Shown piece by piece: positions 4,860-46,418 of a stretch of 64,000 nt of DNA. A model generated the notes under the pieces. The model made no database searches, was not told where the DNA came from, and worked only from the letters and a program-made list of their open reading frames with translations. The stretch lies in sequence record OK905446.1. One strand, written 5' to 3'. The first letter of the stretch is position 1. Each line of letters starts with the position of its first letter. The position numbers and the translations under genes are program-made.

Positions 4860-4909
4860 CATCACATCAAAACGACATTATACAGCAATTTAATATGAGG
4901 AAATCAACA

Positions 4910-7327: not shown

Positions 7328-7365
7328 CTGTCATATGAAATATTTCAATAAATGGAATGAAACTA

Positions 7366-20412: not shown

Positions 20413-21294
20413 TTACGTGCCCACTGCATTACCCCAAATCCATACGTGAACACGTACAGAAACGTTGTAACCACGCTCCAATGCTTTCCCTGCGATTGAA
20501 GCCATGTAACCTTGCTGCTCTTGCTCTTCTTGAGTAGCGCCGCATGGCATAATATAAACCGGTACATCGTGTAATCGGCGTTTTGCTTTGAACTGTGCTA
20601 CCACAGCGTCAAGCTCTTCCCAACAATCTTCAGTATCTACGACGACGGGTTTTAACCAGACGTTGCCGATTTGAGCATATTCGTTAACAACTTCAGGCTT
20701 TATTGCCTTTTCAGGAACTTCGCCTGTTACATTGAATAACTTCGCTGATACGCTGAAGTTTAATGTAACTGATTGCAGCGCATTCCAGTTAATTAACGCC
20801 CACTGTTCTCTGAAGTTGGGCTTGAACTTTTGTGTGCCGTTCGTTTCAATTGTGATGTTCTTTGGGAAATTGTCGATTGAAACAAAGTACTTCATCATTT
20901 CGATGATATTTGCTTGATTCATCAACGGCTCACCGCCAGTAATCACCCAGTGAATATCTCCCCATACTCGATTAGGCAGTTTGTCAAGCATTGCTTCGCA
21001 CACGTCTGAAACTTCAGACTTTGAAGCAAGATGAGCATACTTTTTAGCCCACGTGTATGAAGAGTCACAGCCACGAGTCCATACAGGTAGTTCTTCAACT
21101 GAATTCACGTTGTTAGCTTTCGGATCATAGTCTTTGAAGTCTAATACCCATGTATCTTTGTTCGTTGGATCTTCTTGACCGAAGCCGTGACATTCAAGAT
21201 TACAGCCCCAGAAGCGAAAGAATAAACTAGCGTGACCAGTGTATTTGCCTTCGCCTTGAATGCTGTAGAACATTTCTGTCCATTTTACCTGCAT
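20413..21294 (-). CDS. queE: 7-carboxy-7-deazaguanine synthase QueE (radical SAM)
   Basis: EMFYSIQGEGKYTG, FRFWGCNLECHGF...CDSSY, ITGGEPL, IETNGT, VRVHVWIWG. Confidence 0.85.
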   Translation of the reverse strand: MQVKWTEMFYSIQGEGKYTGHASLFFRFWGCNLECHGFGQEDPTNKDTWVLDFKDYDPKANNVNSVEELPVWTRGCDSSYTWAKKYAHLASKSEVSDVCEAMLDKLPNRVWGDIHWVITGGEPLMNQANIIEMMKYFVSIDNFPKNITIETNGTQKFKPNFREQWALINWNALQSVTLNFSVSAKLFNVTGEVPEKAIKPEVVNEYAQIGNVWLKPVVVDTEDCWEELDAVVAQFKAKRRLHDVPVYIMPCGATQEEQEQQGYMASIAGKALERGYNVSVRVHVWIWGNAVGT

Positions 21295-28481: not shown

Positions 28482-28513
28482 CAAAATTCCCTCGTTTGTT
28501 AATTGTTTTCTAT

Positions 28514-29005
28514 TTATTGATCGAAATCAACCTCACTCTCGTTGCCTTCAATTTCTGAAGAAGATTTCACACGAATCTTGTGGGCTTCGATGATGCGTTG
28601 ACGGTATTTGCTGTTGCGTTCTTTATAACACGTTCTCAAGTTCACATAAACTTTACCCGTTTGTGCTTTGTTGATTGTAATGCCGACCATGTATGGCGAA
28701 TCTGGCTTGTTGCCGTACACATTGATGTGCTTCGGTCGCTCGTCTGCTGGCATATTTGCAAGCTCTAAAATTTCGTCTTGGTGATTTTTAATCAAACGAC
28801 CAACGATGATTTCAAAAACACGAGCAGGGAACGAGTGATCCATAATGCGATCAATCACGTGATAGTCCATCGTGACGTAAATACCTTTGTCTACAGCACC
28901 ATGTCGATGTGCAACTTTATTGATGTACTCACGACCTTCACGAAGGACTTTGTAACGGTTAGTACCGTTGAATACTGATTCATATGCCATATCATTTGTC
29001 TCCAA
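28514..29005 (-). CDS. hypothetical protein
   Basis: 163-aa ORF in the nrd operon. Confidence 0.75.
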   Translation of the reverse strand: METNDMAYESVFNGTNRYKVLREGREYINKVAHRHGAVDKGIYVTMDYHVIDRIMDHSFPARVFEIIVGRLIKNHQDEILELANMPADERPKHINVYGNKPDSPYMVGITINKAQTGKVYVNLRTCYKERNSKYRQRIIEAHKIRVKSSSEIEGNESEVDFDQ

Positions 29006-30268: not shown

Positions 30269-30537
30269 TGAAACCAAATTTTAAAATACTAGAAATCGAC
30301 AAATGGGAACACGCGGTAGTAATTGATTGGGGCGACAATTGCGTTTACAAACACAAGCTACCCCCTGAAATCGTCGAGAACGATTTACCACTTGAATCAA
30401 TCATATTCATTCTTGAAGATCTTCGCCCTAGACCACCAGAGATTCAGTCATTGAAGACTCTAACCGAGTTGATGACTGGCACAATCGACGCTGAACGCGA
30501 CGAAGAATTTCAATCACTATTGGACGACTTGGATTAA
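30265..30537 (+). CDS. small acidic hypothetical protein
   Basis: ATGA overlap with the GT; TAATG coupling to the rSAM gene. Confidence 0.7.
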   Translation: MMKPNFKILEIDKWEHAVVIDWGDNCVYKHKLPPEIVENDLPLESIIFILEDLRPRPPEIQSLKTLTELMTGTIDAERDEEFQSLLDDLD

Positions 30538-31589
30538 TGGACAAATTTGGATTCAAAGACGGGAAAAAGCCACTATGTGGCTCTCCCTTTAACACACGCG
30601 ACGCGAAGCCAGACGGCTATCATATCTGCTGCTCACAATTAAGTGAGCCATTTCCGAACGTTGAAGATTGGTGGCATAGTGACATCATCAACGAGCACCG
30701 CGCCAAGATGTTTGATTACGACACGCTGCCAGAGTACTGCAAAGAATGCATGAGCTACGGTGAACTGTCCGACCAGAAGTATTTCGAATATGAAGCACTT
30801 GAAGAACACCCACGGACGATTCAAATATTGATGTCGAATAAGTGTAACCTAGCGTGTCGAATGTGCTACGGCAAGAACAGCAAATCATACATGGATTTGT
30901 ACGACATCGAAGACACATACGACTACAAACAGCTTGATTTCAGTATCCCGAAAGGTGTTGAAACTGTTGTTCTGTATGGCGGCGAACCATTCATGGACAA
31001 GCGAACAGTCGAAGTTCTAACTGAAGTCATGGAAGAAACAAAAGCTGAAGTTTACATTCTGACCAACGGGACTGTACTTCACACGCCATTAGCTAAGAAA
31101 ATTCTAGCAATCTGCAAAAAGTACAAAGACCGTTTGGTATTCACAATCTCATGTGATGGTGGCAAAGAAAGGAACGAATACATTCGTCAGAATATCGACC
31201 ACGACTTGATGCTTGCTAATGTGCCGCTATTGAAAGAACACAGCAAGCACGTTTGTATGCACCACACTCTAAGTCGAATGAGTTATGACACGATTTACGA
31301 CTTCATTCAAGTTGCTGAAAAAGCTCAAGTGTTTGTTGACTTCGGTACAGTAAAAGCACCTCGTGAAATGTCAATCAAGTTCATGGATCCTAAGATCATC
31401 AAAGCTGCAATGAAAACGCAGTATGAGCAAATGAAGGGCATGGAAGAGGGGTATTACAAAGCAGAATTGTTTAGATGCTTGAAGCAAATGCTATCAGTTG
31501 AATACGAACATCGACCTGAATACGACGTTGAATTTGAAAAGAAAATGAAATACATGGACAATCAGATTCAAATCAAAATGGTGAAATAA
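30537..31589 (+). CDS. radical SAM enzyme with N-terminal twitch/SPASM domain
   Basis: CGSPF...CC...CKEC then CNLACRMC, YGGEP, LTNGT. Confidence 0.9.
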   Translation: MDKFGFKDGKKPLCGSPFNTRDAKPDGYHICCSQLSEPFPNVEDWWHSDIINEHRAKMFDYDTLPEYCKECMSYGELSDQKYFEYEALEEHPRTIQILMSNKCNLACRMCYGKNSKSYMDLYDIEDTYDYKQLDFSIPKGVETVVLYGGEPFMDKRTVEVLTEVMEETKAEVYILTNGTVLHTPLAKKILAICKKYKDRLVFTISCDGGKERNEYIRQNIDHDLMLANVPLLKEHSKHVCMHHTLSRMSYDTIYDFIQVAEKAQVFVDFGTVKAPREMSIKFMDPKIIKAAMKTQYEQMKGMEEGYYKAELFRCLKQMLSVEYEHRPEYDVEFEKKMKYMDNQIQIKMVK

Positions 31590-35269: not shown

Positions 35270-36763
35270 TTACGCAGTTACAATCTTTTTAGCAATTTTC
35301 CATTCACCTTCGTTGAGGAAATTTGCTTGTACGTCAGACAGTTTACGCGCTTCTTCAAGTGAGAAGTCAGCAACTGTTACACCATTTTCGAAGATTGTTT
35401 GCATCACGCTTTTCGGATGTACGCGATTTTCGTAATCTTCAGAAGAGAACGTCACGTAACCACGCGCTGCTGGGTTTGGATTTTCTGCATCAACTGCAAT
35501 CAAGTCCAAGAATCCCGCCTTTGATGCTTTAGTCGGATCAGTCTTTGGCATTTTGAACACGCTAACGTATTCACCATTGATGATCGCAGCACTCATTTTC
35601 ATTGCGAAACGTTGAGTATCACGGTCTAGTTGTTGAAGCAAACCACCACCCATACCGAATGCAATGTTTTCTGCTGACCAGCCTTTACTTTCCATGTAAG
35701 ACAAGATTCGACGAATTTCTTCGATGTTCACGCCGTCGCCTTGAATGATGCGGAAACTTGGGTGTAGAACTTTGTAACCTTTGCTGTTGACTGTGTAGCC
35801 AACGTTCTTACCAAGAATCTCAAGACCTTTCATTACGACATCTACAGGCACACCAGAGTCAGGACGAGCAACGAAAGTACCGCCTTTGCTGATGATTAGC
35901 TCTTTAAAGCGACCAGTTGACACACGATTCATTGCTGCTTCGTAGTCATAGCTGTCCATTACGCAAGCGTATAGACCGCCACCCCATTGCTCGATAGAGT
36001 TCAAGAACGCAAGGTCTTCACCTGCTTCTTTGTAGATTGTAGTTGTTGAGTGTTCACGTGCAGGGATAGAGAATCCCGCAATGAAATCTTCAACGTCTTC
36101 AGCGTATAGTTCTTCAACTGCAATCAACGCTTCTACAGTGTCAGTTCCCAAGAAGTTTTTCAAGTGAGCAGAGCCGCCAATAGCTGCTGATTCGCCACTT
36201 GATACACCACGCGAACCAAAGTCGTGAAGTTTGAATGGCTCGATTTGAGGAATAAGCTCATCATCAACCGTAATGTTCATGAACTGGCGAATGATTTTCT
36301 TAACTTCAAACGAGATTGTTGCTACAGTTGTTGGGTACCAAATAGCACGCAAGATAAACGTTTCAAGATAGCCAGGTAGCCAGCCGAATCGTGGATCTGT
36401 GTTTTCAACCGTCAAGATAGGGTGTTTAACTGGTACTACAGTACCTTCTTTTACCGCACGAATCTTAATTGGCAGCTTGCCTTTTAGTTCGTTAACGATG
36501 ATGTCCCAACCCTTATCATTGAAGACTTCTGAACCGAAGTGCTTTTTGAACAGACGTTTCGCACGCTTGACATCGTTCATTGAAACACCCTTTTCGAGAA
36601 TACGACACATGTATGCCATACCATCGATCATAATTTTGTCGAACTTGCCGCCCCGGCTTTCAACATAATATTGACTGTACTCTAGACCACGAGGGAATTG
36701 AGACCAGTGTGAAACTTTGTAGCTGTCAGTTGCGATTGCGATATTTTGAGTAAGATTTAGCAT
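35270..36763 (-). CDS. nadV: nicotinamide phosphoribosyltransferase
   Basis: TDSYKVSH, HDFGSRG, GTDT, PAREHST, RPDSG, IQGDG, FGMGGGLLQ, RDT. Confidence 0.97.
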   Translation of the reverse strand: MLNLTQNIAIATDSYKVSHWSQFPRGLEYSQYYVESRGGKFDKIMIDGMAYMCRILEKGVSMNDVKRAKRLFKKHFGSEVFNDKGWDIIVNELKGKLPIKIRAVKEGTVVPVKHPILTVENTDPRFGWLPGYLETFILRAIWYPTTVATISFEVKKIIRQFMNITVDDELIPQIEPFKLHDFGSRGVSSGESAAIGGSAHLKNFLGTDTVEALIAVEELYAEDVEDFIAGFSIPAREHSTTTIYKEAGEDLAFLNSIEQWGGGLYACVMDSYDYEAAMNRVSTGRFKELIISKGGTFVARPDSGVPVDVVMKGLEILGKNVGYTVNSKGYKVLHPSFRIIQGDGVNIEEIRRILSYMESKGWSAENIAFGMGGGLLQQLDRDTQRFAMKMSAAIINGEYVSVFKMPKTDPTKASKAGFLDLIAVDAENPNPAARGYVTFSSEDYENRVHPKSVMQTIFENGVTVADFSLEEARKLSDVQANFLNEGEWKIAKKIVTA

Positions 36764-36830: not shown

Positions 36831-38009
36831 TTAAAATTTAAACTCATTCACTGCCATTGACTTATCGGCTGCGCTCCAAATCATCGTTCCGATTTCTTGT
36901 GGCGTTAACCGATCTTTCAATTTTTTAAAGTTGCTATACACCAGTTTGTGTGCTGACATAGCTCGTTCTACGGGACAGTGACCCCGCTTAATCAACCAAT
37001 TGTTGAAATTACTAACTGCTTTCTTGATGTCAATATCAATCACATCACTATCCATATAGCAATGCGGCTCGATTATAAAGTGTCTCTTTACGCCACACGG
37101 CGGACACCAATGCATACCATGCCAGTAATTTTGAGACTTTGACAATTCAGTTGTCGAGCACATAAGTGCCGCTGCAATATGCAGTATACCAGTCGAGTGA
37201 GTGATCACGATAGATGCTTTCTGGTTGATATACTCAGCTACATCTTTCAAAGAACCCTCAATGTATTCAACGTCATTGTCAATTGAATCAACAATTTCTT
37301 TGACTGATGCTTCATTGTTGTGAATAACAAACGTCAGCTTCGGCAAACGCTTCATGTACGAATTCATTTCTCTAATAAATTCAATGTACTCATCGTTCGT
37401 CCATCGCCGTTGGGACGTTGCATCATCACATACATGAAACACAAATCTTTTTTCAATTTCAGTGTAGCTCGGTCTACCACTGAAGTTCCATTTCAAGTCA
37501 AGAAGATATGATTCTTCTTCACAATGTATACCAAAGTATTCTTCTAGAATAATTCGATTCACTTCATTGAAATGAAACCAAATTGGGAATTGTAAGCTGT
37601 TAAAGTGTGATGTGTTGATCACTATGTCGAAATAATCATAGTCAATCGGCAGATTCGCACTTAACATGCTAGTTATCTTAGTATCTGCGACAATATCGCT
37701 GCGAATGTCTCTGTACGCTATGCAGCCACTTGAAATGTTATACTGAACATACAAATCAACTTCGCCGATTTCATCGAAATTTTCGATGTTTACCAGAGAT
37801 ACTTTCCCATTTAACTCATGCAGACTTATCATATATTCGATGAGAGGAAACAATTCATTGTGAAACGTGTACGTATGCATCGGTATGAATATTTCGAACT
37901 CTTTATCGTTTTTTGATAATGCATGAGCAAATTTCATTAAAGGGGCGAATGCGATGATAGAATCACCGACATTCGTACCGGGGATGTCAGCGATTATGCG
38001 AAACATCAA
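36831..38009 (-). CDS. GT9 (heptosyltransferase-like) glycosyltransferase
   Basis: VGDSII, RRWTNDEY, SLKDVAEYI, ITHSTGILHIAAAL. Confidence 0.75.
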   Translation of the reverse strand: MMFRIIADIPGTNVGDSIIAFAPLMKFAHALSKNDKEFEIFIPMHTYTFHNELFPLIEYMISLHELNGKVSLVNIENFDEIGEVDLYVQYNISSGCIAYRDIRSDIVADTKITSMLSANLPIDYDYFDIVINTSHFNSLQFPIWFHFNEVNRIILEEYFGIHCEEESYLLDLKWNFSGRPSYTEIEKRFVFHVCDDATSQRRWTNDEYIEFIREMNSYMKRLPKLTFVIHNNEASVKEIVDSIDNDVEYIEGSLKDVAEYINQKASIVITHSTGILHIAAALMCSTTELSKSQNYWHGMHWCPPCGVKRHFIIEPHCYMDSDVIDIDIKKAVSNFNNWLIKRGHCPVERAMSAHKLVYSNFKKLKDRLTPQEIGTMIWSAADKSMAVNEFKF

Positions 38010-38985: not shown

Positions 38986-40110
38986 ATGAAACCACTATGT
39001 TATATGCCGTTCAAGCAACTATTGACTAGAGCCAACAACCAGATTTCATTCTGTTGTTCGGCTGATTATGAATGGTTCACTGATGAGACGACACTAGCAG
39101 ACGCATGGAACGATGAGAAGATGGTCGCATATCGTGAAGCTATGCTAAATCACGATATGAGCAAGCTATCGGCAGCTTGCCAGAAATGTATAACCGATAA
39201 CGACCCCGCACGACTTACTGAATATGATGTTCCAGTATCGCCAATCATGCCCGAAGATTCCGTTAAATGGCTGTTGGTATTCCCTAGCAATGAATGCAAC
39301 CAAGCATGTCGATACTGCTACAGCAAACTATCCGACTTGAAGGCGAGATTCTTCAACGAAGAAGACTCAAGTACAAGATTCAACGACCTGAGCACAACGA
39401 TTAACACGGTAAGCAAAGGATTATCTTCATTGACAATTCTAGGTGGCGAAATCACTAGAGCTTCAAATGGCCCCGAAGTTCTTCGTAATGTCGGTGAAAT
39501 TAACGCGCCAGTTCATATATTCACGAATGGTTCAAGTCTTACACTAGCTGATGGTTCAAGCTTGATTGATTCACTCAAAGAGGCAAACGCATCGACTATA
39601 TTCGTTTCAATCGACGGATTGAGAAAAAGCCAAGACTACATACGAATCTTCTCAGACATAGAACGAGCTAAGGCTAACATCGAGATCATGAGCAAGCACT
39701 TTGATGTGGTGATCACTGGTACGGTATCGAATGTATTACTTGAACATTTAGAAACATTCGTTTCAGATTTCTACGAGACGTATGATGGAGATCGAGTTCG
39801 TTTGTCGGTGAACGTTGTCGGTGAACCAGAAAACCCATATTCGATCTACAATATACCTGATTCATACAAGAAGATTCTCGTTGAACGTTTCAAGAAATTG
39901 CAAGAGAAATATATCGGGCTGGATAGAGAGGACTTGTCTAGACCATTCAAATTTGTCAATGAATGTCTGAATTTAGAACATAGTGAATGTAAGTTCAACC
40001 CAGAATTCTTTGTGCTGAACAATCGCATTGACCAAAAGTCAAAAACTGATTTGAAGACGACTTCACCTGAATTTTACGAACAAGTGAAGCCGTATGACTT
40101 GATTATATAA
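38986..40110 (+). CDS. radical SAM enzyme with N-terminal twitch/SPASM domain
   Basis: CYMPF...CC...CQKC then CNQACRYC, LGGE, FTNG. Confidence 0.9.
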   Translation: MKPLCYMPFKQLLTRANNQISFCCSADYEWFTDETTLADAWNDEKMVAYREAMLNHDMSKLSAACQKCITDNDPARLTEYDVPVSPIMPEDSVKWLLVFPSNECNQACRYCYSKLSDLKARFFNEEDSSTRFNDLSTTINTVSKGLSSLTILGGEITRASNGPEVLRNVGEINAPVHIFTNGSSLTLADGSSLIDSLKEANASTIFVSIDGLRKSQDYIRIFSDIERAKANIEIMSKHFDVVITGTVSNVLLEHLETFVSDFYETYDGDRVRLSVNVVGEPENPYSIYNIPDSYKKILVERFKKLQEKYIGLDREDLSRPFKFVNECLNLEHSECKFNPEFFVLNNRIDQKSKTDLKTTSPEFYEQVKPYDLII

Positions 40111-41092
40111 TCACGTTACGTTCAAATTCGCTTAGGAACTTGTTATAACCACTAGCGAATTGTTTGGCTAGTGGTAACGGCTGTTTATTGAGGTACGGCA
40201 ATTGAACATGAATTATGTCATCAATTGTCGTCTTCGGGATAGTCGTCACGCTAAGGTGATGTGGGAAAGTACACATATTCGCAATGATATTGACTTTCCC
40301 ATTTTTCAAATGGGTTGGGTTTATCTCAAACAACATTTCATCGTACAAGTCAACGAAATGATGTATGGATTTATTCGTCATCGTATACTCAACTGCCAAA
40401 TGTATGTTCGGGATGTCGTCGATTGAGTCTAGAACTTTATTGATAGTTCGGTAGATTCTTTCTTGCTTTGCCCCGAACCTCACTTCCTCATTGAATTCCT
40501 TTGGACCATCCATTGAGAAAATCAATGTCACGTCACATTTCAATCGCTGTATCGCTTTCAAAAAACGTTCAGGGAATACAGTACCATTAGACGTAAAGAT
40601 GAATCGTTCGACTTTATCAGGGTCAAGATTCTCAATGATTTCAGCAATCTTCTTGTCTAGAACTGGGTTGCCACCCGAAATCGCAACTGAGCGAGTGTCT
40701 TTCAAGAATGGAATCACATCAAAGTTGTTCTCAATAATCCCCAATTTACCATCATTGTATTTCTTGTCGTAGCTGTGAGAAATCGACGAGCTACACATTT
40801 CACATGCATACTCACATTTATTCGACCGAGCAATAAACAATTCTTGAAAATTCAACTCGACGATGGTTTCAGTTGGCTTGACTTCAGAAGTCACAAGACC
40901 GTCTCTCATGCTTTTACAAGTGCGACAAGATTCTGGGATTTCGCCAGCAATGACCTGCTTACGGAGTTCGATAATCTCATCACTATTCCAAAATGAAATA
41001 TCAGGGTACACTTTCTGACCGGGCATCGAACATATTTTGAAACCGTCTGGTGTAATAGACGGCGATAGAAATGGTGATATGCAATATTTCAT
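40103..41092 (-). CDS. radical SAM enzyme with N-terminal twitch/SPASM domain
   Basis: CISPF...C...CRTC then CEYACEMC, SGGNP, TSNGT. Confidence 0.9.
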   Translation of the reverse strand: MKYCISPFLSPSITPDGFKICSMPGQKVYPDISFWNSDEIIELRKQVIAGEIPESCRTCKSMRDGLVTSEVKPTETIVELNFQELFIARSNKCEYACEMCSSSISHSYDKKYNDGKLGIIENNFDVIPFLKDTRSVAISGGNPVLDKKIAEIIENLDPDKVERFIFTSNGTVFPERFLKAIQRLKCDVTLIFSMDGPKEFNEEVRFGAKQERIYRTINKVLDSIDDIPNIHLAVEYTMTNKSIHHFVDLYDEMLFEINPTHLKNGKVNIIANMCTFPHHLSVTTIPKTTIDDIIHVQLPYLNKQPLPLAKQFASGYNKFLSEFERNVII

Positions 41093-41094
41093 AG

Positions 41095-41988
41095 TTACCC
41101 TATATGTTTAAATCCCGCCGATGTCTGTTTGCCGGGAGTTTGTTTTGACACCGCGTGCCATTGATTGTTTCGTTTCACAGCACACACTTTGTAAATCAAC
41201 CCGTATGTATCTCGTGAAATGTTGCTGAATGCAAAGCTACCAATCCCGAAGAAAACTCGTTTGCTACCGCGATAATATTCAACGAGTGAAATCCATTCAT
41301 CTAGCGATACACTCTCCGCCTGAGCTACAAAGCATTCGGTTTCTGCAAGAACATGATCAATAGTCTCGACAATCGGCTGCGAATCAACCATCACTGTACC
41401 ACGAAAGTTCTTCTTCTTGATCAAGTCAATGCACGCTTGTTTGTCAAACGTGTCAATCATAATACCGCGATAGTTATCCATGCAATATTCTTCGCCATTT
41501 ATCAGTATGTCACTATGCATGGCTACTGGTGCTTTATCGCCAGAAGAAACATAGAATATGCGCGAGAACATGTCACGAGCTTTATCACTCTGTTCTTGAG
41601 TTGAACTAGAACGACCGATCTGAGCATAAGCTGACCCAACACCGAAATCGTTATTCTGTAGAACGTCACGGCAGTGGTGCAATATAGTACCGACTGTGCT
41701 TGAATACCACAATTCATTGTACAACAATGTTTCGATCATATTACCGTATTGCAGCTTGCTTCTGTCTCGAATAGTCACCGTTACCGCCGCCTGCCCCCTT
41801 TCAATAAACGTGCCTTCAGGAACATGCTTAATTTCGATGAAATCATACTCGTTAACTTTCTCAACTAACGAGTCAATCCCATACAGATAAAACCCGTGAG
41901 TTCGACTACCGAAGTACCATTGAGCACCTTGAACATCTTCTCGATAACTATGCTCAAACTTATCGGCTGTGTGTTCGATTAAATTCAT
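41095..41988 (-). CDS. divergent, compact NAMPT/NAPRT-like type II phosphoribosyltransferase
   Basis: Collinear with NadV: VPEGT, WYSSTVGT, AMHS, IDTFD, VDSQ, FFGIG, RDT, GKQTSAG. Confidence 0.75.
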   Translation of the reverse strand: MNLIEHTADKFEHSYREDVQGAQWYFGSRTHGFYLYGIDSLVEKVNEYDFIEIKHVPEGTFIERGQAAVTVTIRDRSKLQYGNMIETLLYNELWYSSTVGTILHHCRDVLQNNDFGVGSAYAQIGRSSSTQEQSDKARDMFSRIFYVSSGDKAPVAMHSDILINGEEYCMDNYRGIMIDTFDKQACIDLIKKKNFRGTVMVDSQPIVETIDHVLAETECFVAQAESVSLDEWISLVEYYRGSKRVFFGIGSFAFSNISRDTYGLIYKVCAVKRNNQWHAVSKQTPGKQTSAGFKHIG

Positions 41989-42649
41989 CTAAAAATTCCT
42001 TGATTTTATCTACCGTATCAGACCCAAACATGTGATTAGCCATTGCAGATATAGCAACATCATTCACAATTTCAGTAAGTCGGTCGATGTCGGGATTATC
42101 AGTGAACATAGAACTAACATGTGCATCAACACACTTACTACAACGACCGCAATTATTATCGCGATTGTAACAATGTTGCAGAGTATTTGCATCAATCCCA
42201 TATTCATGAGCTAGTTGTATAATCTCACGTTTCGTCTTGGTTATAAACGGCTGCTCTATTCTACATTCTCGTCCAAGCAACTTAGACCACATATCAGCGA
42301 TTTCGTCTGAATGTTCGATTGTCGCATCATAGTAAAAGTCGTCACCATTCAGCGTACCGCGATAAATCACAGACGGTCTAAACGCATGAAACACAGCGTT
42401 GAACATCATTGTGTTGCGACCGATTAAATCTGGATTTCGCGGAGTCTTGAACTCGTACGGATCGTGCTGAATATGCAGAAGTTCAGGCATTTCAATGATA
42501 GTAGTTTCAGGTGGTAGCTTTTCTATTTCGAATTCATCAATAGAAAAGCCCCATTTGAAATAAACAGGATGAGGCTTTCTATCGAGAAATTCATATAAAA
42601 CCAAGCTATCTAACCCCGAAACAAGTATGATTTCATCATAGCTGGTCAC
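41960..42649 (-). CDS. QueC-like PP-loop ATPase with C-terminal zinc site
   Basis: SGLDS, GRN, PFITKTKREII, CY...CGRCSKC; GTG start at 42649 after GGAG. Confidence 0.8.
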   Translation of the reverse strand: MTSYDEIILVSGLDSLVLYEFLDRKPHPVYFKWGFSIDEFEIEKLPPETTIIEMPELLHIQHDPYEFKTPRNPDLIGRNTMMFNAVFHAFRPSVIYRGTLNGDDFYYDATIEHSDEIADMWSKLLGRECRIEQPFITKTKREIIQLAHEYGIDANTLQHCYNRDNNCGRCSKCVDAHVSSMFTDNPDIDRLTEIVNDVAISAMANHMFGSDTVDKIKEFLDEFNRTHSR

Positions 42650-43286
42650 GAAGCACTCCAGATTGTCTATAGTAGATTGAATGCACAAACTTATTACAAT
42701 TAGCTACAACTCGCTCGATGTAACCTTCATCTATGAATTGACTATACATCATCATGACATGAAAGTAAATTTCCCACGGGAACACTAGCGTATACATGCT
42801 GTTTCGTTTGTTCTCTTCATCGGGCTTGAAGTCTTTGGTATTGATACTAACGCATTCTTTAACCAAATCAATAGCTCGATAGTAAGCTTCCAAATCACCG
42901 TGTTTTGAAATGTTGTAGTTGGCTATGCAGACACGAGGATTGATTAACCCTTCTCGTTCGCCATTTCTTTTCACTACAAAATCATCAACGTCTCCCGGTT
43001 GCCAAGCACAATGCCAACGACCTGCATCAATGAAACTGGATACGCCGTATGTCTTGTCCATGAAAAAGTTATCCACAGAGATATACACATACTCTTCGGG
43101 TAGTTCTCTTTCGAATGACAGTCGTGGCATTTCAAAGTCAAGTTCAAGATCAGTGATGCAAACAACTCGACCTTTTTTGTGTGTTTCTATGAATGACCCG
43201 ACAAATATAGCCAGTTGATTCAACTGGCTCATGTCATTGATCGATGTGTGAATTACGTAATCATACATTATCGAAATTACCCCCAA
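42636..43286 (-). CDS. hypothetical protein in the modification operon
   Basis: Overlaps both neighbours; no family recognised. Confidence 0.7.
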   Translation of the reverse strand: MGVISIMYDYVIHTSINDMSQLNQLAIFVGSFIETHKKGRVVCITDLELDFEMPRLSFERELPEEYVYISVDNFFMDKTYGVSSFIDAGRWHCAWQPGDVDDFVVKRNGEREGLINPRVCIANYNISKHGDLEAYYRAIDLVKECVSINTKDFKPDEENKRNSMYTLVFPWEIYFHVMMMYSQFIDEGYIERVVANCNKFVHSIYYRQSGVLRDQL

Positions 43287-44118
43287 GTTTTAGTATCGTA
43301 TCGCGATAAAGTTCGTAGTTGAATTCAACATCTTCAACACTACCATACAGACCTGACATTGGTGACGATATGATTCGATTCACAATCGTCTTATGGTCTT
43401 CGCCAGTACGTTCTGCAATGTCCCACACTGTTTTCACAAACGCTGTGTATGTACCAACAAACTTTTCTGAATCAATGAAGTCGATTTCTTTGTCATACAT
43501 CAACGCACTAAACCAGAATTCAGACGTAGTTGGTAACCAAACTCGCTTTGCCGATTTCAATACATCTATACCTGAGATTTTATTGGATAGCACTTTCTTC
43601 GAATCGTATCGAGTCTTGAGCATATTCATGTAATACACAGACGTAATCGGGTGCGGCTTAATAACAGCGTCGGGGTATTGTTCAAATACCAAATCTAGCT
43701 TGTCAAAATCAACTGCAATTTCTAATACATTTGTCCCACACAGAAACACAACGTTGTCATATTGCAGAAATCTAGGCTTTGATGATAGTTTATATTTGTC
43801 AGCGTGGTCGAACTCTCGAAAGTAGTCGTGAATGTAGTCAGACGGATTTTGGTAGGCATGTTCGAATATTTTCCGCTGGAAATCATCGTTCATGTATTTC
43901 AGGTGAATGAAACTGATTTGAGACACCCATTCATGAACACCGATGTTGCCGCCGTCATTGTGATTGATGTCGAAATTGCAAGGGATATTGTTCGAATTCA
44001 ATAAACTGACAATGTCCATGCACATGGCACGAACATTGTCTGCACAGTGACGCAGTTTAAGCGTCCCTATGCGACTCATATTATTGAAACCCGTCATTTC
44101 ATTGTTGTTTGGGTTCAT
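43261..44118 (-). CDS. KpsC/KpsS-like (capsule synthesis) glycosyltransferase
   Basis: DKY, VIKPHP, VLKSAKRVWLPTTSEFWFSALMYDKEI resemble the beta-Kdo/sialyl-transferase GT-B C-terminal lobe. Confidence 0.55.
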   Translation of the reverse strand: MNPNNNEMTGFNNMSRIGTLKLRHCADNVRAMCMDIVSLLNSNNIPCNFDINHNDGGNIGVHEWVSQISFIHLKYMNDDFQRKIFEHAYQNPSDYIHDYFREFDHADKYKLSSKPRFLQYDNVVFLCGTNVLEIAVDFDKLDLVFEQYPDAVIKPHPITSVYYMNMLKTRYDSKKVLSNKISGIDVLKSAKRVWLPTTSEFWFSALMYDKEIDFIDSEKFVGTYTAFVKTVWDIAERTGEDHKTIVNRIISSPMSGLYGSVEDVEFNYELYRDTILKLGGNFDNV

Positions 44119-44320
44119 ACTTTTCCACTATCTCACTAAGGCTATCATCATATGACTGCAAAATCATATCACGCTCACTCTCAAGTGAGGCAATGTGATC
44201 GATGATAGCTTCACTATTAGCAGTCATAGACTCAACTAAATTTTCAATAATCTTTTCTAGGCGTTTATTCGCGTCTTCGAGTTTCGAAACACGCGCCTCT
44301 AGATCTTCATTATAACTCAT
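44099..44320 (-). CDS. small coiled-coil protein
   Basis: LEARVSKLEDANKRLEKIIENL heptads. Confidence 0.7.
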   Translation of the reverse strand: MSYNEDLEARVSKLEDANKRLEKIIENLVESMTANSEAIIDHIASLESERDMILQSYDDSLSEIVEKYEPKQQ

Positions 44321-44332
44321 GTTTATTTCTCA

Positions 44333-44839
44333 CTAAACGGGAACTTGTGTTGTACGTGTTGTATTGTATGCGGTCGAACGGCTGGTATTATACGTCGTTG
44401 TCCACGTTGTAGTGTAACCAGTTGAACGAGTTGTGTTGTACGACGTTGAACGAGTTGTACTTCTAGATGTTGCATACGTCGTGCTGTAACTACCTTTTGT
44501 TACCGATGTTGTTACAGTCGTGTTGTAAGTGGTAGTATATGTCGTTGTTCTCGTTGACTGATACGTGGTATTTCGAGTAGTTGAACGTGACGTTGAATTC
44601 GACGTTGAATACGTTGTACTACGTGATGTCGAATACGTTGTACTACGTGATGAAAGACGATAGACGCCACGCAAGTTAGCTAAACTTATCGCGCCTGATG
44701 TTGGCACGTGGTTATTTTCAGTAATGTTCGGAACGATACCACCACCTCGGTAATACTGAGACAGCGAAGCAGCGCCGGTTTTGCTGAAATAATCACGCAC
44801 GGTACCAATTGAAATAGCACCAGTTGTAGGTGTTGGCAT
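44333..44839 (-). CDS. Thr/Ser-rich tetrapeptide-repeat protein with a phage fibre-tip-like N-terminal domain
   Basis: N-terminus GAISIG...SLSQYYRGG...VPTSGAISL; C-terminal 106 aa contain 66 Ser/Thr; 24-nt tandem repeat at 44607-44652. Confidence 0.8.
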   Translation of the reverse strand: MPTPTTGAISIGTVRDYFSKTGAASLSQYYRGGGIVPNITENNHVPTSGAISLANLRGVYRLSSRSTTYSTSRSTTYSTSNSTSRSTTRNTTYQSTRTTTYTTTYNTTVTTSVTKGSYSTTYATSRSTTRSTSYNTTRSTGYTTTWTTTYNTSRSTAYNTTRTTQVPV

Positions 44840-44870
44840 GTTAGTAATTCCTTATTAGTCCATATAGAAC

Positions 44871-44878
44871 TATTTATG
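44871..44878 (-). promoter_or_regulatory. late promoter CATAAATA
   Basis: Same box as before both tail fibre genes; 31 nt upstream of ATG 44839. Confidence 0.7.
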
Positions 44879-44908: not shown

Positions 44909-45757
44909 TTACTGCTTAGATTTAGCTTGAATATGTTTGGCTAGTCGTGCATAGTCTTGAGTTGTCCACATTTGCGGAAACTGAGATTTCAATACTTCAG
45001 CTTGTTTGTATTCTTCTGCGCTCACGATTTGAGATTTCGCAATACGCTGTGGATACTTTGAAGCATTCAATGCATAACAGTAATCATCATCGAACGGGTC
45101 GTCACCGATAATATAATGCTTTTCGTTCGCATGATAAACATGTTCTGGATCAAAAAGCTGAATCTTATGCGCTTCAACAAAATCAAGATCTACAAGTGCC
45201 GCAGCTTCTTCAGCTTCTGCAATTGCTGCCTCAAGTTCGTCGTCAGTTACACCATGTTCGTTATGATTAACCGGATCAGGTCGACCTTCGGCAAAACCTT
45301 GAGAGTCGTCGAACAACTCAACTGCTTGAAGTTCAGCAAGTGCTAGATGCACGTCAGTTGAATCAATGTATTGAGCATTCAACGATACAAGATCAGGTCG
45401 CCAGAATTTCACATCATCAAGATTGCCGAGATAATGCGACTGACATTTGCCAATCTCGTTTGTTGATGTCTTGTATTCAACTGGCAGGTCGCCGAGTACT
45501 GGTTCATTGAACCCGATGTCACGCCAATGAAACTCACGAACAACCCATGATGGTAGTACTGACTTGTTATAAACATCACCTGTTCGAACTTCAGGACAGT
45601 TGCGCCATTCACGCACTGAGCTTTCGTCGTTGTTTGCATTAGAGATAATGTCAAACGGGTGCATTTTGATTCTTAGTTCTTCGATTGCCTGATGTGTGTG
45701 TAGCATATGATTCTCACTTATTAAGTTCAACTTCAAGTTGATGCATTTTACATTCAA
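44909..45757 (-). CDS. hypothetical protein
   Basis: Long ORF; start may be at 45706. Confidence 0.75.
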   Translation of the reverse strand: MNVKCINLKLNLISENHMLHTHQAIEELRIKMHPFDIISNANNDESSVREWRNCPEVRTGDVYNKSVLPSWVVREFHWRDIGFNEPVLGDLPVEYKTSTNEIGKCQSHYLGNLDDVKFWRPDLVSLNAQYIDSTDVHLALAELQAVELFDDSQGFAEGRPDPVNHNEHGVTDDELEAAIAEAEEAAALVDLDFVEAHKIQLFDPEHVYHANEKHYIIGDDPFDDDYCYALNASKYPQRIAKSQIVSAEEYKQAEVLKSQFPQMWTTQDYARLAKHIQAKSKQ

Positions 45758-46418
45758 TGATTAGCTTACGTGCGTCTGAGCCGTCGGCTTGCGTCAATGG
45801 CTTGCCAGCTTGGGTAAGCGTCAACAATTTCGTTTTAGCACGGTTACAGTCGCGTGCAGACTCGATTAAGTAATCATACTCGTGCGGATCAAGTAATTCA
45901 ACCGTCGCGTCGTTGACATCGTTGAGCGTTTTGATTTGCGTCGATTGTGCTTCAGCTTCACGACGAACTAGGTCAGCTTTCATTTCAAGCTCTTCAATTC
46001 TCGCGGCTGCTTCGTCGAGTGATTCTGGCTTAACATAACCACATTGCTCATTCAAGCTAATCCCGTACTGAGAACGCCACTGATTGTTGAACGTACGTTC
46101 GTATGTGTTGCGAATGCCTTCTTCCGATTTACCAATCGCTGCAATCACGTCACAGAACGGGATTTTACTGTCGTCGCGACGTACAGCACTTTCACCGTAT
46201 TTGTTTCGAGTTGCAAGAGCCCGCCATGTTTCTTTGTACAAGTAGTTGCTACCGTCAGCGTCTGCTAACCAGTAGTTAATCATTTCTCGCTCTTTAGCAT
46301 TGACTACTTTTTCAACGACCTTGAATGTCGGGTCAGTTTTGTCTTTAAGCGTTGGGGCAGGCTTACTACAACCAGCAAGTGTTGCAACTGCTAACGCGAC
46401 TAGAATTGCTCTTTTCAT
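45714..46418 (-). CDS. lipoprotein, paralogue of 32573-33292
   Basis: Lipobox TLAGC; shared motifs with the paralogue. Confidence 0.8.
   Translation of the reverse strand: MKRAILVALAVATLAGCSKPAPTLKDKTDPTFKVVEKVVNAKEREMINYWLADADGSNYLYKETWRALATRNKYGESAVRRDDSKIPFCDVIAAIGKSEEGIRNTYERTFNNQWRSQYGISLNEQCGYVKPESLDEAAARIEELEMKADLVRREAEAQSTQIKTLNDVNDATVELLDPHEYDYLIESARDCNRAKTKLLTLTQAGKPLTQADGSDARKLIIECKMHQLEVELNK

Follow-up and report, generated by a model that had tools for sequence, protein, structure and literature searches.

We find that Vibrio phage VS1 carries a cassette, headed by a late-promoter-like box, in which a threonine-rich repeat protein with fibre-adhesin-like features is followed by a predicted glycosyltransferase and other enzymes, and that the same pairing recurs in many unrelated phages. 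This suggests a dedicated, still uncharacterised system for decorating a virion protein, a reading that we regard as about evenly balanced; both the chemistry and the virion location remain inferred. The window analysed, 64,000 nucleotides long, is 100% identical to VS1 (OK905446.1), a 248-kb KVP40-like phage of the Straboviridae, and the cassette corresponds to KVP40.0254-0260. Three comparative results are new: the almost constant association of the glycosyltransferase family with Thr/Ser-rich ORFs, the recurrence of the fuller cassette in at least ten phage lineages, and the joint presence or absence of the repeat protein and the enzymes in Vibrio straboviruses.

The first-pass annotation had described seven packed minus-strand genes behind a box shared with both tail-fibre genes, and this observation is confirmed. 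The genes, here p1 to p7, are p1 (44333-44839), p2 (44099-44320, after a 12-nt gap), p3 (43261-44118, overlapping p2 by 20 nt), p4 (42636-43268, overlapping p3 by 8 nt), p5 (41960-42649 or 41960-42688, overlapping p4), p6 (41095-41988, overlapping p5 by 29 nt) and p7 (40103-41092, after a 2-nt gap), all on the minus strand. The box, CATAAATA, a T4-type late-promoter-like element with C at the first position, lies at 44871-44878 on the minus strand, 31 nt before the p1 ATG. An identical box lies 29 and 30 nt before the two tail-fibre genes at 7357 and 10694, whose products of 1088 and 1098 aa carry Phage_T4_gp36 and Peptidase_S74 domains. By count alone the box is not above chance (4 copies against 2.8 expected), but three of the four copies have this fixed spacing to a start codon, and the box and its flanks are conserved at -39 and -40 in QD01 and KVP40 despite about 72% DNA identity. 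First-position variants of the late consensus are used in T4 (PMC2988020). However, a NATAAATA box also precedes nrdA, so that the box alone does not prove late timing, for which no transcript data exist, and in 6E35.1a and F86 it differs by one base.

The first product, p1 (168 aa; KVP40.0254 in KVP40; phrog_30374 at 2.7e-66), is 30% Thr and 17% Ser. An N-terminal domain of roughly 60 aa, with two copies of a T/S-G-x-I-S...(R/Y)G motif around YYRGG-x-VP, is followed by about 26 tetrapeptide units of the form [R/Y/W/N/V]-x-T-[T/S], with a lag-4 autocorrelation of 0.6-0.75, arranged in two arms separated by a central T-K-G-S turn, and by a hydrophobic C-end. It has neither a signal peptide nor a lipobox. 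Homologues occur in five Vibrio-phage lineages, and p1-like proteins also occur in five of the sibling cassettes described below (L089, L090, L091, L179 and L182). The N-terminal domain is modular: homologues occur in 80 IMG/VR contigs and in Xanthomonas, Ralstonia, Stenotrophomonas and Synechococcus phages; members of the family have Gly-rich (Gly_rich_2) C-termini and, in one weak case, a GP38-adhesin-like C-terminus, and in RTH11 and S-SSM7 they sit near tail-fibre genes.

The second product, p2 (73 aa; phrog_5851), is a small helical or coiled-coil-like protein with only weak bZIP-type hits and a conserved (V/I)(D/E)-H-I-(A/S/G)-x-L-(D/E) motif. It always lies between p1 and the glycosyltransferase, and homologues occupy the same position in L089, L090, L091, L180 and L182. 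Its role is unknown, a chaperone or adaptor function being an inference.

Fold and profile comparison had been proposed beforehand as a check of the domain calls; each call holds, though only weakly. The third product, p3 (285 aa), is a compact predicted GT-B glycosyltransferase with an invariant K-P-H-P motif and an S-E motif, and resembles CMP-ulosonic-acid (Kdo or sialic acid) transferases. It has no Pfam hit of its own and no Pfam glycosyltransferase model reaches its threshold, but the profile of its family (201 representatives with conserved motifs) hits KpsC (6mgb) at 0.023 across the HP and S-S/E motifs, and relatives give weak Pfam hits to Capsule_synth, GT52 and polyST. The AF2 model has a pLDDT of 92.3, and its top Foldseek hits in the PDB are all GT-B, including the KrKA Kdo transferase-CMP complex at 1.5e-3, although these matches are weak (E about 1e-3, TM 0.2-0.3). 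Protein O-glycosyltransferases acting on Ser-rich repeats (SdgB, GtfA/B, OGT) are among them, and Foldseek against BFVD finds Tetraselmis virus 'capsule polysaccharide biosynthesis' proteins. The fourth product, p4 (210 aa counted from the ATG at 43268; phrog_30897), accompanies p3 in every full cassette, with homologues in L089, L090, L091, L179 and L182. Its fold is unknown: searches of Pfam, NCBIfam and the PDB returned no hit, an alignment of six lineages gave 40 invariant columns, and AF2 gave no usable model (pLDDT 41).

The fifth product, p5, starts either at the GTG at 42649 or at the TTG at 42688, and was called QueC-like. It is a QueC-family PP-loop enzyme with an invariant SG[L/I]DS loop and a C-x6-C-x2-C-x2-C metal site, but it lies nearest to Cap9, the protein-conjugating branch of that family: its profile hits Cap9 (9nto_B) at 5.3e-5 over the full length, against 0.032 and a partial match for QueC (2pg3). 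Pfam QueC matches the C-terminal half only (6.5e-9), TIGR00364 scores 30.6 bits against a cut-off of 150, and the PADLOC CBASS-type QueC model matches over the full length at 1.2e-11. The sixth product, p6 (297 aa), is a truncated and divergent NAMPT/NAPRT-family protein (Pfam NAPRTase at 3.3e-7; PRK09198 at 67 bits against a cut-off of 405), for which NAMPT hits in the PDB cover two short segments only. It is 20% identical to the NadV encoded in the window, with about 80 residues missing and the His of the G-S-A-H segment replaced by Tyr. The last product, p7 (329 aa; phrog_14086), is a radical SAM enzyme with an N-terminal Cys-rich, twitch-type domain and a C-x3-C-x2-C cluster motif (Pfam Radical_SAM at 6.6e-11; NF033640 N_Twi_rSAM at 8e-32, 110.8 bits against a cut-off of 170), with weak viperin-model hits. 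A convergent paralogous N-twitch radical SAM gene (38986-40110, plus strand; 374 aa, 22% identical to p7) overlaps p7 by 8 nt at its 3' end and is kept next to p7 in KVP40, 6E35.1a and F86, and could be a further member of the unit. As the first-pass annotation stated, a canonical nadV (35270-36763) and a QueE-like gene (20413-21294) are also present in the window.

Whether such genes co-occur in other genomes had been named in advance as a point on which the proposal could fall, and the neighbourhoods of the glycosyltransferase family were surveyed. In 79 of 85 loci holding a p3-family gene, a Thr/Ser-rich ORF of 160-1550 aa (T 40%, S 15%, almost no Pro) ends a median 145 nt upstream on the same strand; four of the other six loci have less than 600 nt of upstream sequence and so could not be assessed. 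After dereplication the association is found in 29 of 30 clusters at 90% identity and 7 of 8 at 50%, whereas such ORFs occur about 0.1 times per 8 kb in control phage loci. The fuller cassette, in the order p1-like (N-domain/Thr-repeat) protein, small helical p2-like protein, glycosyltransferase, 216-aa (p4-like) protein and radical SAM enzyme, is found in five Vibrio strabovirus lineages, KVP40, VS1/QD01, 6E35.1a, D479 (with rearranged order) and F86, and in the sibling cassettes L089, L090 (a P1-like element), L091, L179 and L182. Sibling cassettes lack p5 and p6, which are thus lineage-specific accessories rather than core genes, and one sibling carries a GalE-like sugar epimerase.

The cassette often sits beside tail-fibre genes. 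L089 and L090 place it directly after Peptidase_S74 or P1-type tail-fibre genes, and in another locus, L180, the p2-like gene and the glycosyltransferase directly follow a 1676-aa Peptidase_S74 fibre gene. Caulobacter phage Lullwater has tail fibre gp40, Thr/Tyr-rich gp41, then glycosyltransferase-like gp42, and Caulobacter phage Cr30 has fibre-like gp253, Thr/Tyr-rich gp254, glycosyltransferase-like gp255, then the neck protein. Among Vibrio straboviruses, VH7D-type phages carry in the same slot an N-domain protein with a globular non-Thr C-terminus and none of the enzymes, and nt-1 and K566/K567 lack both p1 and the enzymes. As the genes are adjacent, this joint presence and absence could however be plain linkage.

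The first-pass annotation had proposed that the operon builds an unusual sugar or nucleoside and attaches it to the Ser/Thr array of p1, giving a decorated fibre tip; our analysis supports this only in part. The enzymes and the Thr/Ser-rich gene do form a conserved unit, and the glycosyltransferase family is found almost exclusively directly downstream of Thr/Ser-rich ORFs. The gene structure, the domain families, the GT-B fold (as a prediction), the conservation, and the co-occurrence of the glycosyltransferase family with Thr/Ser-rich ORFs and with tail-fibre genes rest on the analysis itself, while late transcription, virion location, the identity of p1 as acceptor, the donor sugar and every step involving p4 to p7 are inferred. 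The scenario we favour is a late-expressed maturation cassette for one protein, p1, whose N-terminal domain, being shared with many phage proteins with variable, adhesin-like C-termini, would probably anchor it to the virion, most likely to a fibre; the fibre tip is a lead only. In this view p3, helped by p2 and p4, would transfer a sugar onto the Thr/Ser hydroxyls of p1, the motifs suggesting a CMP-activated ulosonic acid such as Kdo or a nonulosonate supplied by the host, and p7 would either tailor the attached group or modify p1 directly, the Cap9-like ligase p5 and the NAMPT-like p6 of the Vibrio-phage lineages having the same two options. There is no direct evidence that p1 is modified or present in the virion, nor that p5 and p6 build the attached group. 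The radical SAM enzymes of sibling cassettes resemble protein-modifying maturases as much as sugar enzymes, so that direct radical modification of p1 is an equally open route. Published virion mass spectrometry of the relative 6E35.1a (PMC12028318) detected none of the enzymes, as expected for non-structural proteins, and did not list p1, but is neutral for p1, whose ORF was not annotated and was thus absent from the search database. The Thr-rich arrays, moreover, almost lack proline and look like ordered beta structure rather than a mucin-like acceptor, and neighbouring genes (a GT9 heptosyltransferase-like gene here, PagP in relatives) point to cell-envelope targets.

Four alternative scenarios are considered: an anti-defence island, host envelope remodelling, radical modification of p1 and DNA hypermodification. 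The first, although unlikely in our view, survives best. The claim that no such gene set was known in T4-like phages is partly outdated, as the published analysis of 6E35.1a presents VP6E351A_0314-0326 (p3 onwards) as an ancestral 'anti-defence island' swapped as a unit in K566/K567 (PMC12028318). The Cap9-like QueC, the NAMPT-like protein and the viperin-like radical SAM enzymes would then make or destroy a nucleotide-type small molecule that counters host immunity, such as NAD depletion or CBASS, p1 to p4 being mere neighbours. The PADLOC match of p5, pVip model matches to the radical SAM enzymes (5e-8 to 8e-13), the proximity (3 kb) of nadV, the NARP2 gene, and the fact that the locus is a replacement hot spot are in line with this. 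However, the published label rests on annotation only, without experiments on the block, and the pVip hits are generic radical SAM core matches far below family cut-offs. Furthermore, p6 has lost about 80 core residues and the conserved His, p5 and p6 are missing from sibling cassettes in which p1, p2, the glycosyltransferase, p4 and a radical SAM enzyme persist, those cassettes sit in tail-fibre modules, and the unit is headed by a late-type box shared with the fibre genes.

Host envelope remodelling is slightly less likely still. Here p3 and its partners would act on lipopolysaccharide or capsule of the infected cell, for example for superinfection exclusion or release, and p1 would be a secreted or surface protein, or unrelated. 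The nearest sequence and fold relatives of p3 are lipid A and capsule enzymes (LpxB, KpsC, KrKA and WaaC), the GT9 heptosyltransferase-like gene lies at 36831-38009, PagP-like genes occupy the equivalent region in VH7D, nt-1 and K566, and K566 gained 'lipid A biosynthesis' genes there (PMC12028318). However, this scenario explains neither the association of 29 of 30 glycosyltransferase clusters with a Thr/Ser-rich ORF directly upstream, nor the location of the pair between the tail-fibre and holin/terminase or neck genes in T7-like and T4-like Caulobacter phages, and the absence of a signal peptide or lipobox in p1 also speaks against it.

A RiPP-like radical modification is likewise unlikely. 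The radical SAM enzyme(s) would act directly on the regularly spaced aromatic, basic and Thr residues of p1, forming cross-links or performing C-beta oxidation or epimerisation that rigidify a fibre-like hairpin, with glycosylation secondary or absent. Every full cassette has at least one radical SAM gene, and in siblings the best family matches, all below cut-off, are protein- or peptide-modifying maturases: PapB, anaerobic sulfatase maturase, and the YhhB, DynA, GrrM, XyeB and AmcB cyclophane formers. The p7 enzyme gives weaker hits of the same kind. The p1 repeats also place W/Y two residues before a Thr in a strict period of 4, and the two arms flank a conserved G-x-G-K turn. On the other hand, peptide maturases dominate the NCBIfam radical SAM models, which biases the ranking, and no leader or recognition element was identified. 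The radical SAM subfamily is not the same in all cassettes, since the twitch-type profile did not find the sibling enzymes, and most glycosyltransferase/Thr-rich pairs in marine contigs have no radical SAM gene nearby, only 17 loci having one.

Finally, DNA hypermodification by p5, p6 and p7 as extra 7-deazaguanine-pathway paralogues is suggested by the QueC-family and radical SAM annotations (Prokka-type records name these genes queC and queE) and by the dPreQ0-type DNA bases made in this phage family (PMC12028318), but is very unlikely, as a complete canonical set (FolE, QueD, QueE, QueC, DpdA, QueF) lies elsewhere in KVP40 (PMC8056088), p5 fails the QueC equivalog cut-off and has an altered PP-loop, p7 is not QueE-like beyond the radical SAM core, and VH7D-type and nt-1 phages lack the cassette yet keep the deazaguanine genes.

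The sequence is 100% identical to Vibrio phage VS1 (OK905446.1, 248 kb), 88 to 89% identical to VS2 and QD01, and about 72% identical over the block to KVP40 and its close relatives, in which the block corresponds to KVP40.0254-0260. Seven minus-strand ORFs (p1 to p7) fill 40103-44839, with gaps of 2 to 12 nt or overlaps of 8 to 29 nt. A CATAAATA box lies 31 nt before the p1 start codon, and the same box lies 29 and 30 nt before the two gp36/Peptidase_S74 tail-fibre genes at 7357 and 10694. We rejected the idea that the number of boxes is itself significant, since four copies are present against 2.8 expected. What carries weight is the fixed spacing, together with conservation of the box and about 25 flanking bases in QD01 and KVP40; in the more distant 6E35.1a and F86, the corresponding element differs at one position. 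The box has C at the first position of the eight-base T4 late element, and first-position variants are known in T4. However, a similar AATAAATA box (28511-28518, minus strand) lies 29 nt upstream of the start of nrdA, the ribonucleotide reductase large-subunit gene, so that the box and its spacing are not exclusive to structural genes. A literature search for a Schizotequatrovirus transcriptome returned nothing relevant and no transcript data were found. Taken together, these observations leave assignment of the box as a late promoter going neither way; late timing is therefore plausible, but not demonstrated. A canonical nadV (35270-36763) and a QueE-like gene (20413-21294) are also present, and the canonical QueC, QueE and DpdA genes of KVP40 are catalogued elsewhere in that genome (PMC8056088). 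The gene block and promoter-like box described in the first-pass annotation are thus confirmed.

The first gene product, p1 (168 aa), has a conserved N-terminal domain of about 60 aa, followed by two arms of [R/Y/W/N/V]-x-T-[T/S] tetrapeptides separated by a short Lys/Gly turn, with a lag-4 autocorrelation of 0.6 to 0.75. It is not a chance ORF in a repeat, as its N-domain has homologues in more than 80 contigs and the repeat frame is kept in ten lineages. The next product, p2, is a 73-aa helical protein. Word-indexed homologue searches with p3, the p1 N-domain and p4 found only near-identical phage proteins, and more distant relatives were reached by an exhaustive profile search and by pattern scans. 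PDB sequence and profile searches found nothing meaningful for p3 alone, p4, p5 alone or the p1 N-domain. No relative of p4 was detectable outside these cassettes, and its AF2 model, made from a two-sequence alignment, was unusable (pLDDT 41), so that no fold search was run on it.

The 285-aa protein p3 has no Pfam family at E <= 0.1 apart from a chance hit. The exhaustive profile search found 201 representative relatives sharing DKY, G-S-N, K-P-H-P, S-G and S-E motifs. K154, H156 and P157 are invariant in 64 relatives, P155 is invariant as well among the 11 closest, and S199 and E200 are nearly invariant. The family profile hits KpsC structures (E = 0.023), and both motifs align with the HP and S-S-Q motifs of KpsC. 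Single relatives touch the Capsule_synth, GT52 and polysialyltransferase models, but only 2 of 64 touch Capsule_synth (PF05159), at E = 1e-3, and p3 itself reaches no curated threshold. Fold searching had been named in advance as a check. An AF2 model of p3 built on 64 sequences has a pLDDT of 92.3, and its top Foldseek matches in the PDB are all GT-B enzymes, with a probability of up to 0.97, although E is only about 1e-3 and TM scores are 0.2 to 0.3. LpxB and a retaining Kdo transferase-CMP complex (KrKA, the second-best match) come first, and the protein O-glycosyltransferases SdgB, GtfA/B and OGT are among the matches. In BFVD, the matches are the Cr30-length homologue, algal-virus 'capsule polysaccharide biosynthesis' proteins and glycosyltransferases. 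The predicted two-Rossmann-domain fold and the motifs therefore agree with HP-motif GT-B enzymes, while the sequence similarity is weak. Two scans of species-representative bacterial genomes for the p3 family found no relative, and the module therefore looks phage-restricted, although only narrow patterns were used.

The idea that p5 is a spare canonical QueC was rejected. It scores 30.6 bits with TIGR00364 against an equivalog cut-off of 150.3, over the C-terminal part only, and its Pfam QueC hit (PF06508), although above the gathering score (36 against 22), covers only model positions 116-200. Instead of the canonical SGGxDS PP-loop and C(x)8CxxCxxC zinc site (PMC13329287), it has an SG[L/I]DS loop, one residue shorter and invariant in five lineages, and a C-x6-C-x2-C-x2-C motif; both are conserved variants of the canonical motifs. 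Its best solved relative is Cap9 (9nto_B, E = 5.3e-5 over residues 14-188 of 191), whereas canonical QueC scores 0.032. The PADLOC CBASS-type QueC model gives the same picture (positions 9-182 of 190, 1.2e-11). The operon partners of Cap9, the TGT-like Cap10 and a CD-NTase, were not found in the cassette or its flanks. The sixth protein, p6, is a shortened NAMPT relative of 297 aa against 497 aa for NadV. It has no NAMPT_N hit and scores 67 bits with PRK09198 against a cut-off of 405. In a pairwise alignment with the phage's own NadV it lacks about 80 core residues and has Tyr in place of the His of the G-S-A-H stretch; PRTase activity was not assayed. The last protein, p7 (40103-41092, minus strand), appears to be a radical SAM enzyme of the N-terminal-twitch type, as do its convergent neighbour (38986-40110, plus strand) and a third paralogue (30537-31589, plus strand), so that three such genes lie within 11 kb, the first two overlapping by 8 nt at their 3' ends. 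The C-x3-C-x2-C motif and N-terminal cysteines are present in p7, and NF033640 is its best hit (8e-32 over the whole length), but with 110.8 bits against a cut-off of 170, which settles membership of that family in neither direction. All three paralogues score below this cut-off and give weak viperin-model hits.

The comparative evidence decides the reading. The p1 N-domain is a widespread phage module, found in 80 IMG/VR contigs and in Xanthomonas, Ralstonia, Stenotrophomonas and Synechococcus phages, where it is joined to quite different C-termini. None of those contigs carries the enzymes except KVP40 itself. Some of these C-termini match Gly_rich_2, one weakly matches the gp38 adhesin family (20.8 bits against a Pfam threshold of 25), and several of the genes sit by tail-fibre genes.

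Whether repeat genes and such enzymes occur together in other genomes had been set beforehand as a test that could overturn the reading, and the outcome supports its core idea. Starting from the p3 family in IMG/VR plus five look-ups, we examined 85 loci. In 79 of them, a Thr/Ser-rich ORF ends a median 145 nt upstream on the same strand, and four of the remaining six have too little upstream sequence to be examined. After dereplication, the figure is 29 of 30 clusters at 90% identity, 14 of 15 at 70% and 7 of 8 at 50%, whereas the background density of such ORFs in control phage loci is about 0.1 per 8 kb. The partner proteins are 160 to 1550 aa long and contain 40% Thr, 15% Ser and 9% Asn, with regularly spaced F/Y/R and almost no Pro. 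In the marine IMG/VR contigs (loci L095 to L173), very long Thr-rich proteins (up to 1547 aa) begin with repeated V-N-D-x-G-T-L-R-type motifs and end in a small conserved domain. Each is followed by the glycosyltransferase, a 315-aa unknown gene, and then convergent GT29-like (weak hit), phrog_28018, nrdB and nrdA genes. None of these proteins has any annotation, and PHROGs and Pfam gave no function for the Thr-rich partners or the 315-aa gene.

The full cassette (p1-like, p2-like, glycosyltransferase, p4-like, radical SAM) recurs beyond the five Vibrio strabovirus lineages. In L089, an 82-kb contig, it lies between Peptidase_S74 fibre genes and includes a GalE-like epimerase. In L090, a P1-like element, it lies directly after the P1-type fibre genes, and its p1 is 379 aa. 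Loci L091, L179 and L182 also carry it. In these siblings, p5 and p6 are replaced by an unrelated, unannotated family of about 250 aa (L089 9442-11041, in two tandem copies; L090 8458-9210; L179 2885-3649; L182 8477-9127), which has no Pfam hit and for which PHROGs gave no function, so the QueC-like and NAMPT-like genes are lineage-specific accessories. Caulobacter phage Lullwater (T7-like) has tail fibre gp40, Thr/Tyr-rich gp41, then GT-like gp42, and Caulobacter phage Cr30 (T4-like) has fibre-like gp253, Thr/Tyr-rich gp254, GT-like gp255, then the neck protein.

Within Vibrio straboviruses, the repeat protein and the enzymes are present together or absent together. Linkage alone could produce this pattern, which is therefore weaker evidence than the recurrence across families. 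The slot after the phrog_13539 gene (44909-45757 and downstream; loci L084, L085 and L088) is a replacement hot spot in Schizotequatrovirus-like phages. VH7D-type phages carry there an N-domain protein with a globular C-terminus and none of the enzymes, together with PagP in VH7D; nt-1 carries an FG-GAP protein, NadV and PagP; K566 and K567 carry a different island with a lipoprotein (475 aa in K566), three radical SAM enzymes and a glycosyltransferase, together with PagP in K566.

A study of Schizotequatroviruses (ISME J 2025, PMC12028318) labels VP6E351A_0314-0326 (p3 onwards) an ancestral 'anti-defence island', replaced in K566/K567. Its annotation table tags the QueC-like protein with a CBASS QueC hit and the radical SAM enzyme with a viperin hit. 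Absence of the repeat protein from virions had been put forward as a result that would refute the reading, and the virion proteome of that study (94 proteins) lists none of the cassette proteins. However, the re-annotation used as search database does not contain the p1 ORF, so that this data set is silent on p1. The ORF (L003 13569-14102; L086 and L087 around 9001; GenBank QZI87587.1 / MYOV011v1_p0320) is annotated in MW824377 ('putative cell wall mannoprotein'), but is not called in the later OZ-series records of the 6E35 group or in the annotation table of the study, where tiny ORFs, some on the opposite strand, are called over it instead. This is a systematic gap in gene calling for low-complexity ORFs, which propagates into proteomics databases. 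A lipoprotein-like gene two genes upstream of p1 (45714-46418, minus strand; lipobox signal, phrog_8733) has a 6E35.1a homologue detected at low counts (4 and 2) in purified particles. We found no paper describing the Thr-repeat/glycosyltransferase pairing.

The question arises as to what such a cassette does. The best-supported reading, which we hold with no more than moderate confidence, is that p1 is a late, fibre-associated accessory protein and that the downstream genes mature it. The step with most support is sugar transfer by p3 to the Thr/Ser array, given the predicted fold, the motifs and the near-obligate adjacency to such arrays. The HP-motif kinship suggests a CMP-activated ulosonic acid supplied by Gram-negative hosts, which would explain why minimal two-gene versions need no sugar-synthesis genes; this is inferred from the motifs only, donor use not having been assayed. 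The roles of p2 and p4 (always present) and of the radical SAM enzymes are not known. Several points weigh against this reading: no modification, virion location or timing has been measured, the Pro-poor repeats look like ordered beta structure, the similarities of p3 are weak, and the surrounding region in relatives carries envelope-modifying genes, PagP and a GT9-like gene. The GT9 (heptosyltransferase I/RfaF-like) gene of VS1 (36831-38009, minus strand), next to nadV, is present in QD01 but absent from KVP40, and points to a second, possibly LPS-directed, sugar activity. The interpretation proposed in the first-pass annotation is thus partly supported: its core idea, enzymes dedicated to the adjacent Thr/Ser-rich protein, is supported by co-occurrence across phage families, whereas an unusual sugar or nucleoside built by the QueC-like, PRTase and radical SAM enzymes, and a fibre-tip location, are not established, and the QueC-like and PRTase genes are not core.

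Direct radical chemistry on the regularly spaced aromatic and Thr residues is a live alternative or addition, since the radical SAM enzymes of sibling cassettes resemble protein-modifying maturases, with scores far below the cut-offs. As in systems of cyclophane-forming three-residue enzymes or anaerobic sulfatase maturase, a radical SAM enzyme is encoded beside a repeat substrate with regularly spaced aromatic and beta-branched residues. However, p7 appears to have an N-terminal twitch-type domain instead of a C-terminal SPASM domain, no leader peptide was identified, and the substrate would be a 17 to 40 kDa protein. In addition, p5 and p6 could add or tailor a carboxylated heterocycle; the Cap9 precedent and the phage's own deazaguanine pathway make a nucleobase-type adduct conceivable, but unproven. 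Taken to its furthest, and this we consider unlikely although not excluded, p1 would be a virion fibre protein matured like a giant RiPP, its repeat hairpin cross-linked or oxidised by the radical SAM enzyme. In Vibrio phages it would additionally carry a nucleobase- or nucleotide-derived group installed by the Cap9-like p5 and the NAMPT-like p6, using the phage's 7-deazaguanine pathway. That would be a phage-encoded counterpart of protein deazaguanylation, on a structural protein, combined with Kdo-type O-glycosylation.

Phage-encoded modification of a virion protein is already known, and virion glycosylation has so far been documented mainly in mycobacteriophages (O-glycosylation; Freeman et al. 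2023, Cell Host Microbe 31:1216; PMC10527164; listed in PMC12801897). There, phage-encoded glycosyltransferase genes sit next to the structural gene whose Ser/Thr-rich segment they modify, resulting in a decorated virion; the acceptors are C-terminal extensions of the capsid and tail-tube proteins, and the enzymes ordinary GT-A or GT-B families in actinobacteriophages. Here the acceptor would be a separate small repeat protein with its own anchoring domain, and the glycosyltransferase belongs to an HP-motif, Kdo/sialyl-transferase-like family accompanied by radical SAM, QueC-family and NAMPT-like genes, whose enzymology is unexplored. Adjacency to a Thr/Ser-rich ORF and, in several phages, tail-fibre neighbours were observed, but as p1 has not been placed in the virion and glycans were not examined, these observations do not say whether the cassette is a system of this type, and nothing has been shown biochemically. 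In the glycosylation of bacterial Ser-rich repeat adhesins (GtfA/GtfB on SRRPs, SdgA/SdgB on SD-repeat proteins), a dedicated GT-B enzyme is likewise encoded beside a low-complexity repeat protein and modifies Ser hydroxyls along the array. Those enzymes, however, are UDP-GlcNAc-dependent GT4-type enzymes of Gram-positive cocci, p3 is half their size and has the KPHP motif of CMP-sugar enzymes, and the matches are at fold level only (E about 1e-2). The KpsC/KpsS, WbbB and KrKA Kdo transferases and bacterial sialyltransferases share the HP motif, but act on lipid- or glycan-linked acceptors, not proteins.

Cap9 and QatC are QueC-family enzymes that conjugate a 7-deazaguanine to a protein N-terminus (bioRxiv 10.1101/2025.04.06.647259; PMC13279940; PMC13329287), and the phage itself encodes the pathway to the carboxy-deazaguanine substrate. 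Yet the similarity of p5 is weak, no QatA, QatB or QatD is present, and the context is a phage structural-type cassette, not a bacterial defence operon. T2/T6-type gp38 tail-fibre tip adhesins share with the p1 N-domain family a modular architecture, with a conserved N-terminal attachment part and a variable C-terminal binding part, but p1 itself has no gp38 similarity, and attachment to a fibre tip was not examined.

If the reading is right, a widespread module, occurring in T4-like, T7-like and P1-like phages and in many marine viral contigs, decorates an accessory fibre-like protein, its components being a Thr-rich repeat protein and an HP-motif glycosyltransferase, with optional radical SAM, QueC-family and other enzymes. 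A Gram-negative and marine counterpart of mycobacteriophage virion glycosylation would bear on phage adsorption, on how phage particles are recognised, and on how 'auxiliary metabolic' or 'anti-defence' genes are annotated. The analysis also gives a testable cellular role for three orphan families (p2, p4 and the 250-aa family) and for a Cap9-like QueC paralogue in a virus. Finally, a DUF2828/DUF7788 gene lies upstream of the tail-fibre genes of VS1 (4895-6346, plus strand), and the same domain pair lies near the sibling cassette in L182 (3292-4740), which suggests that this contig comes from a related phage type.
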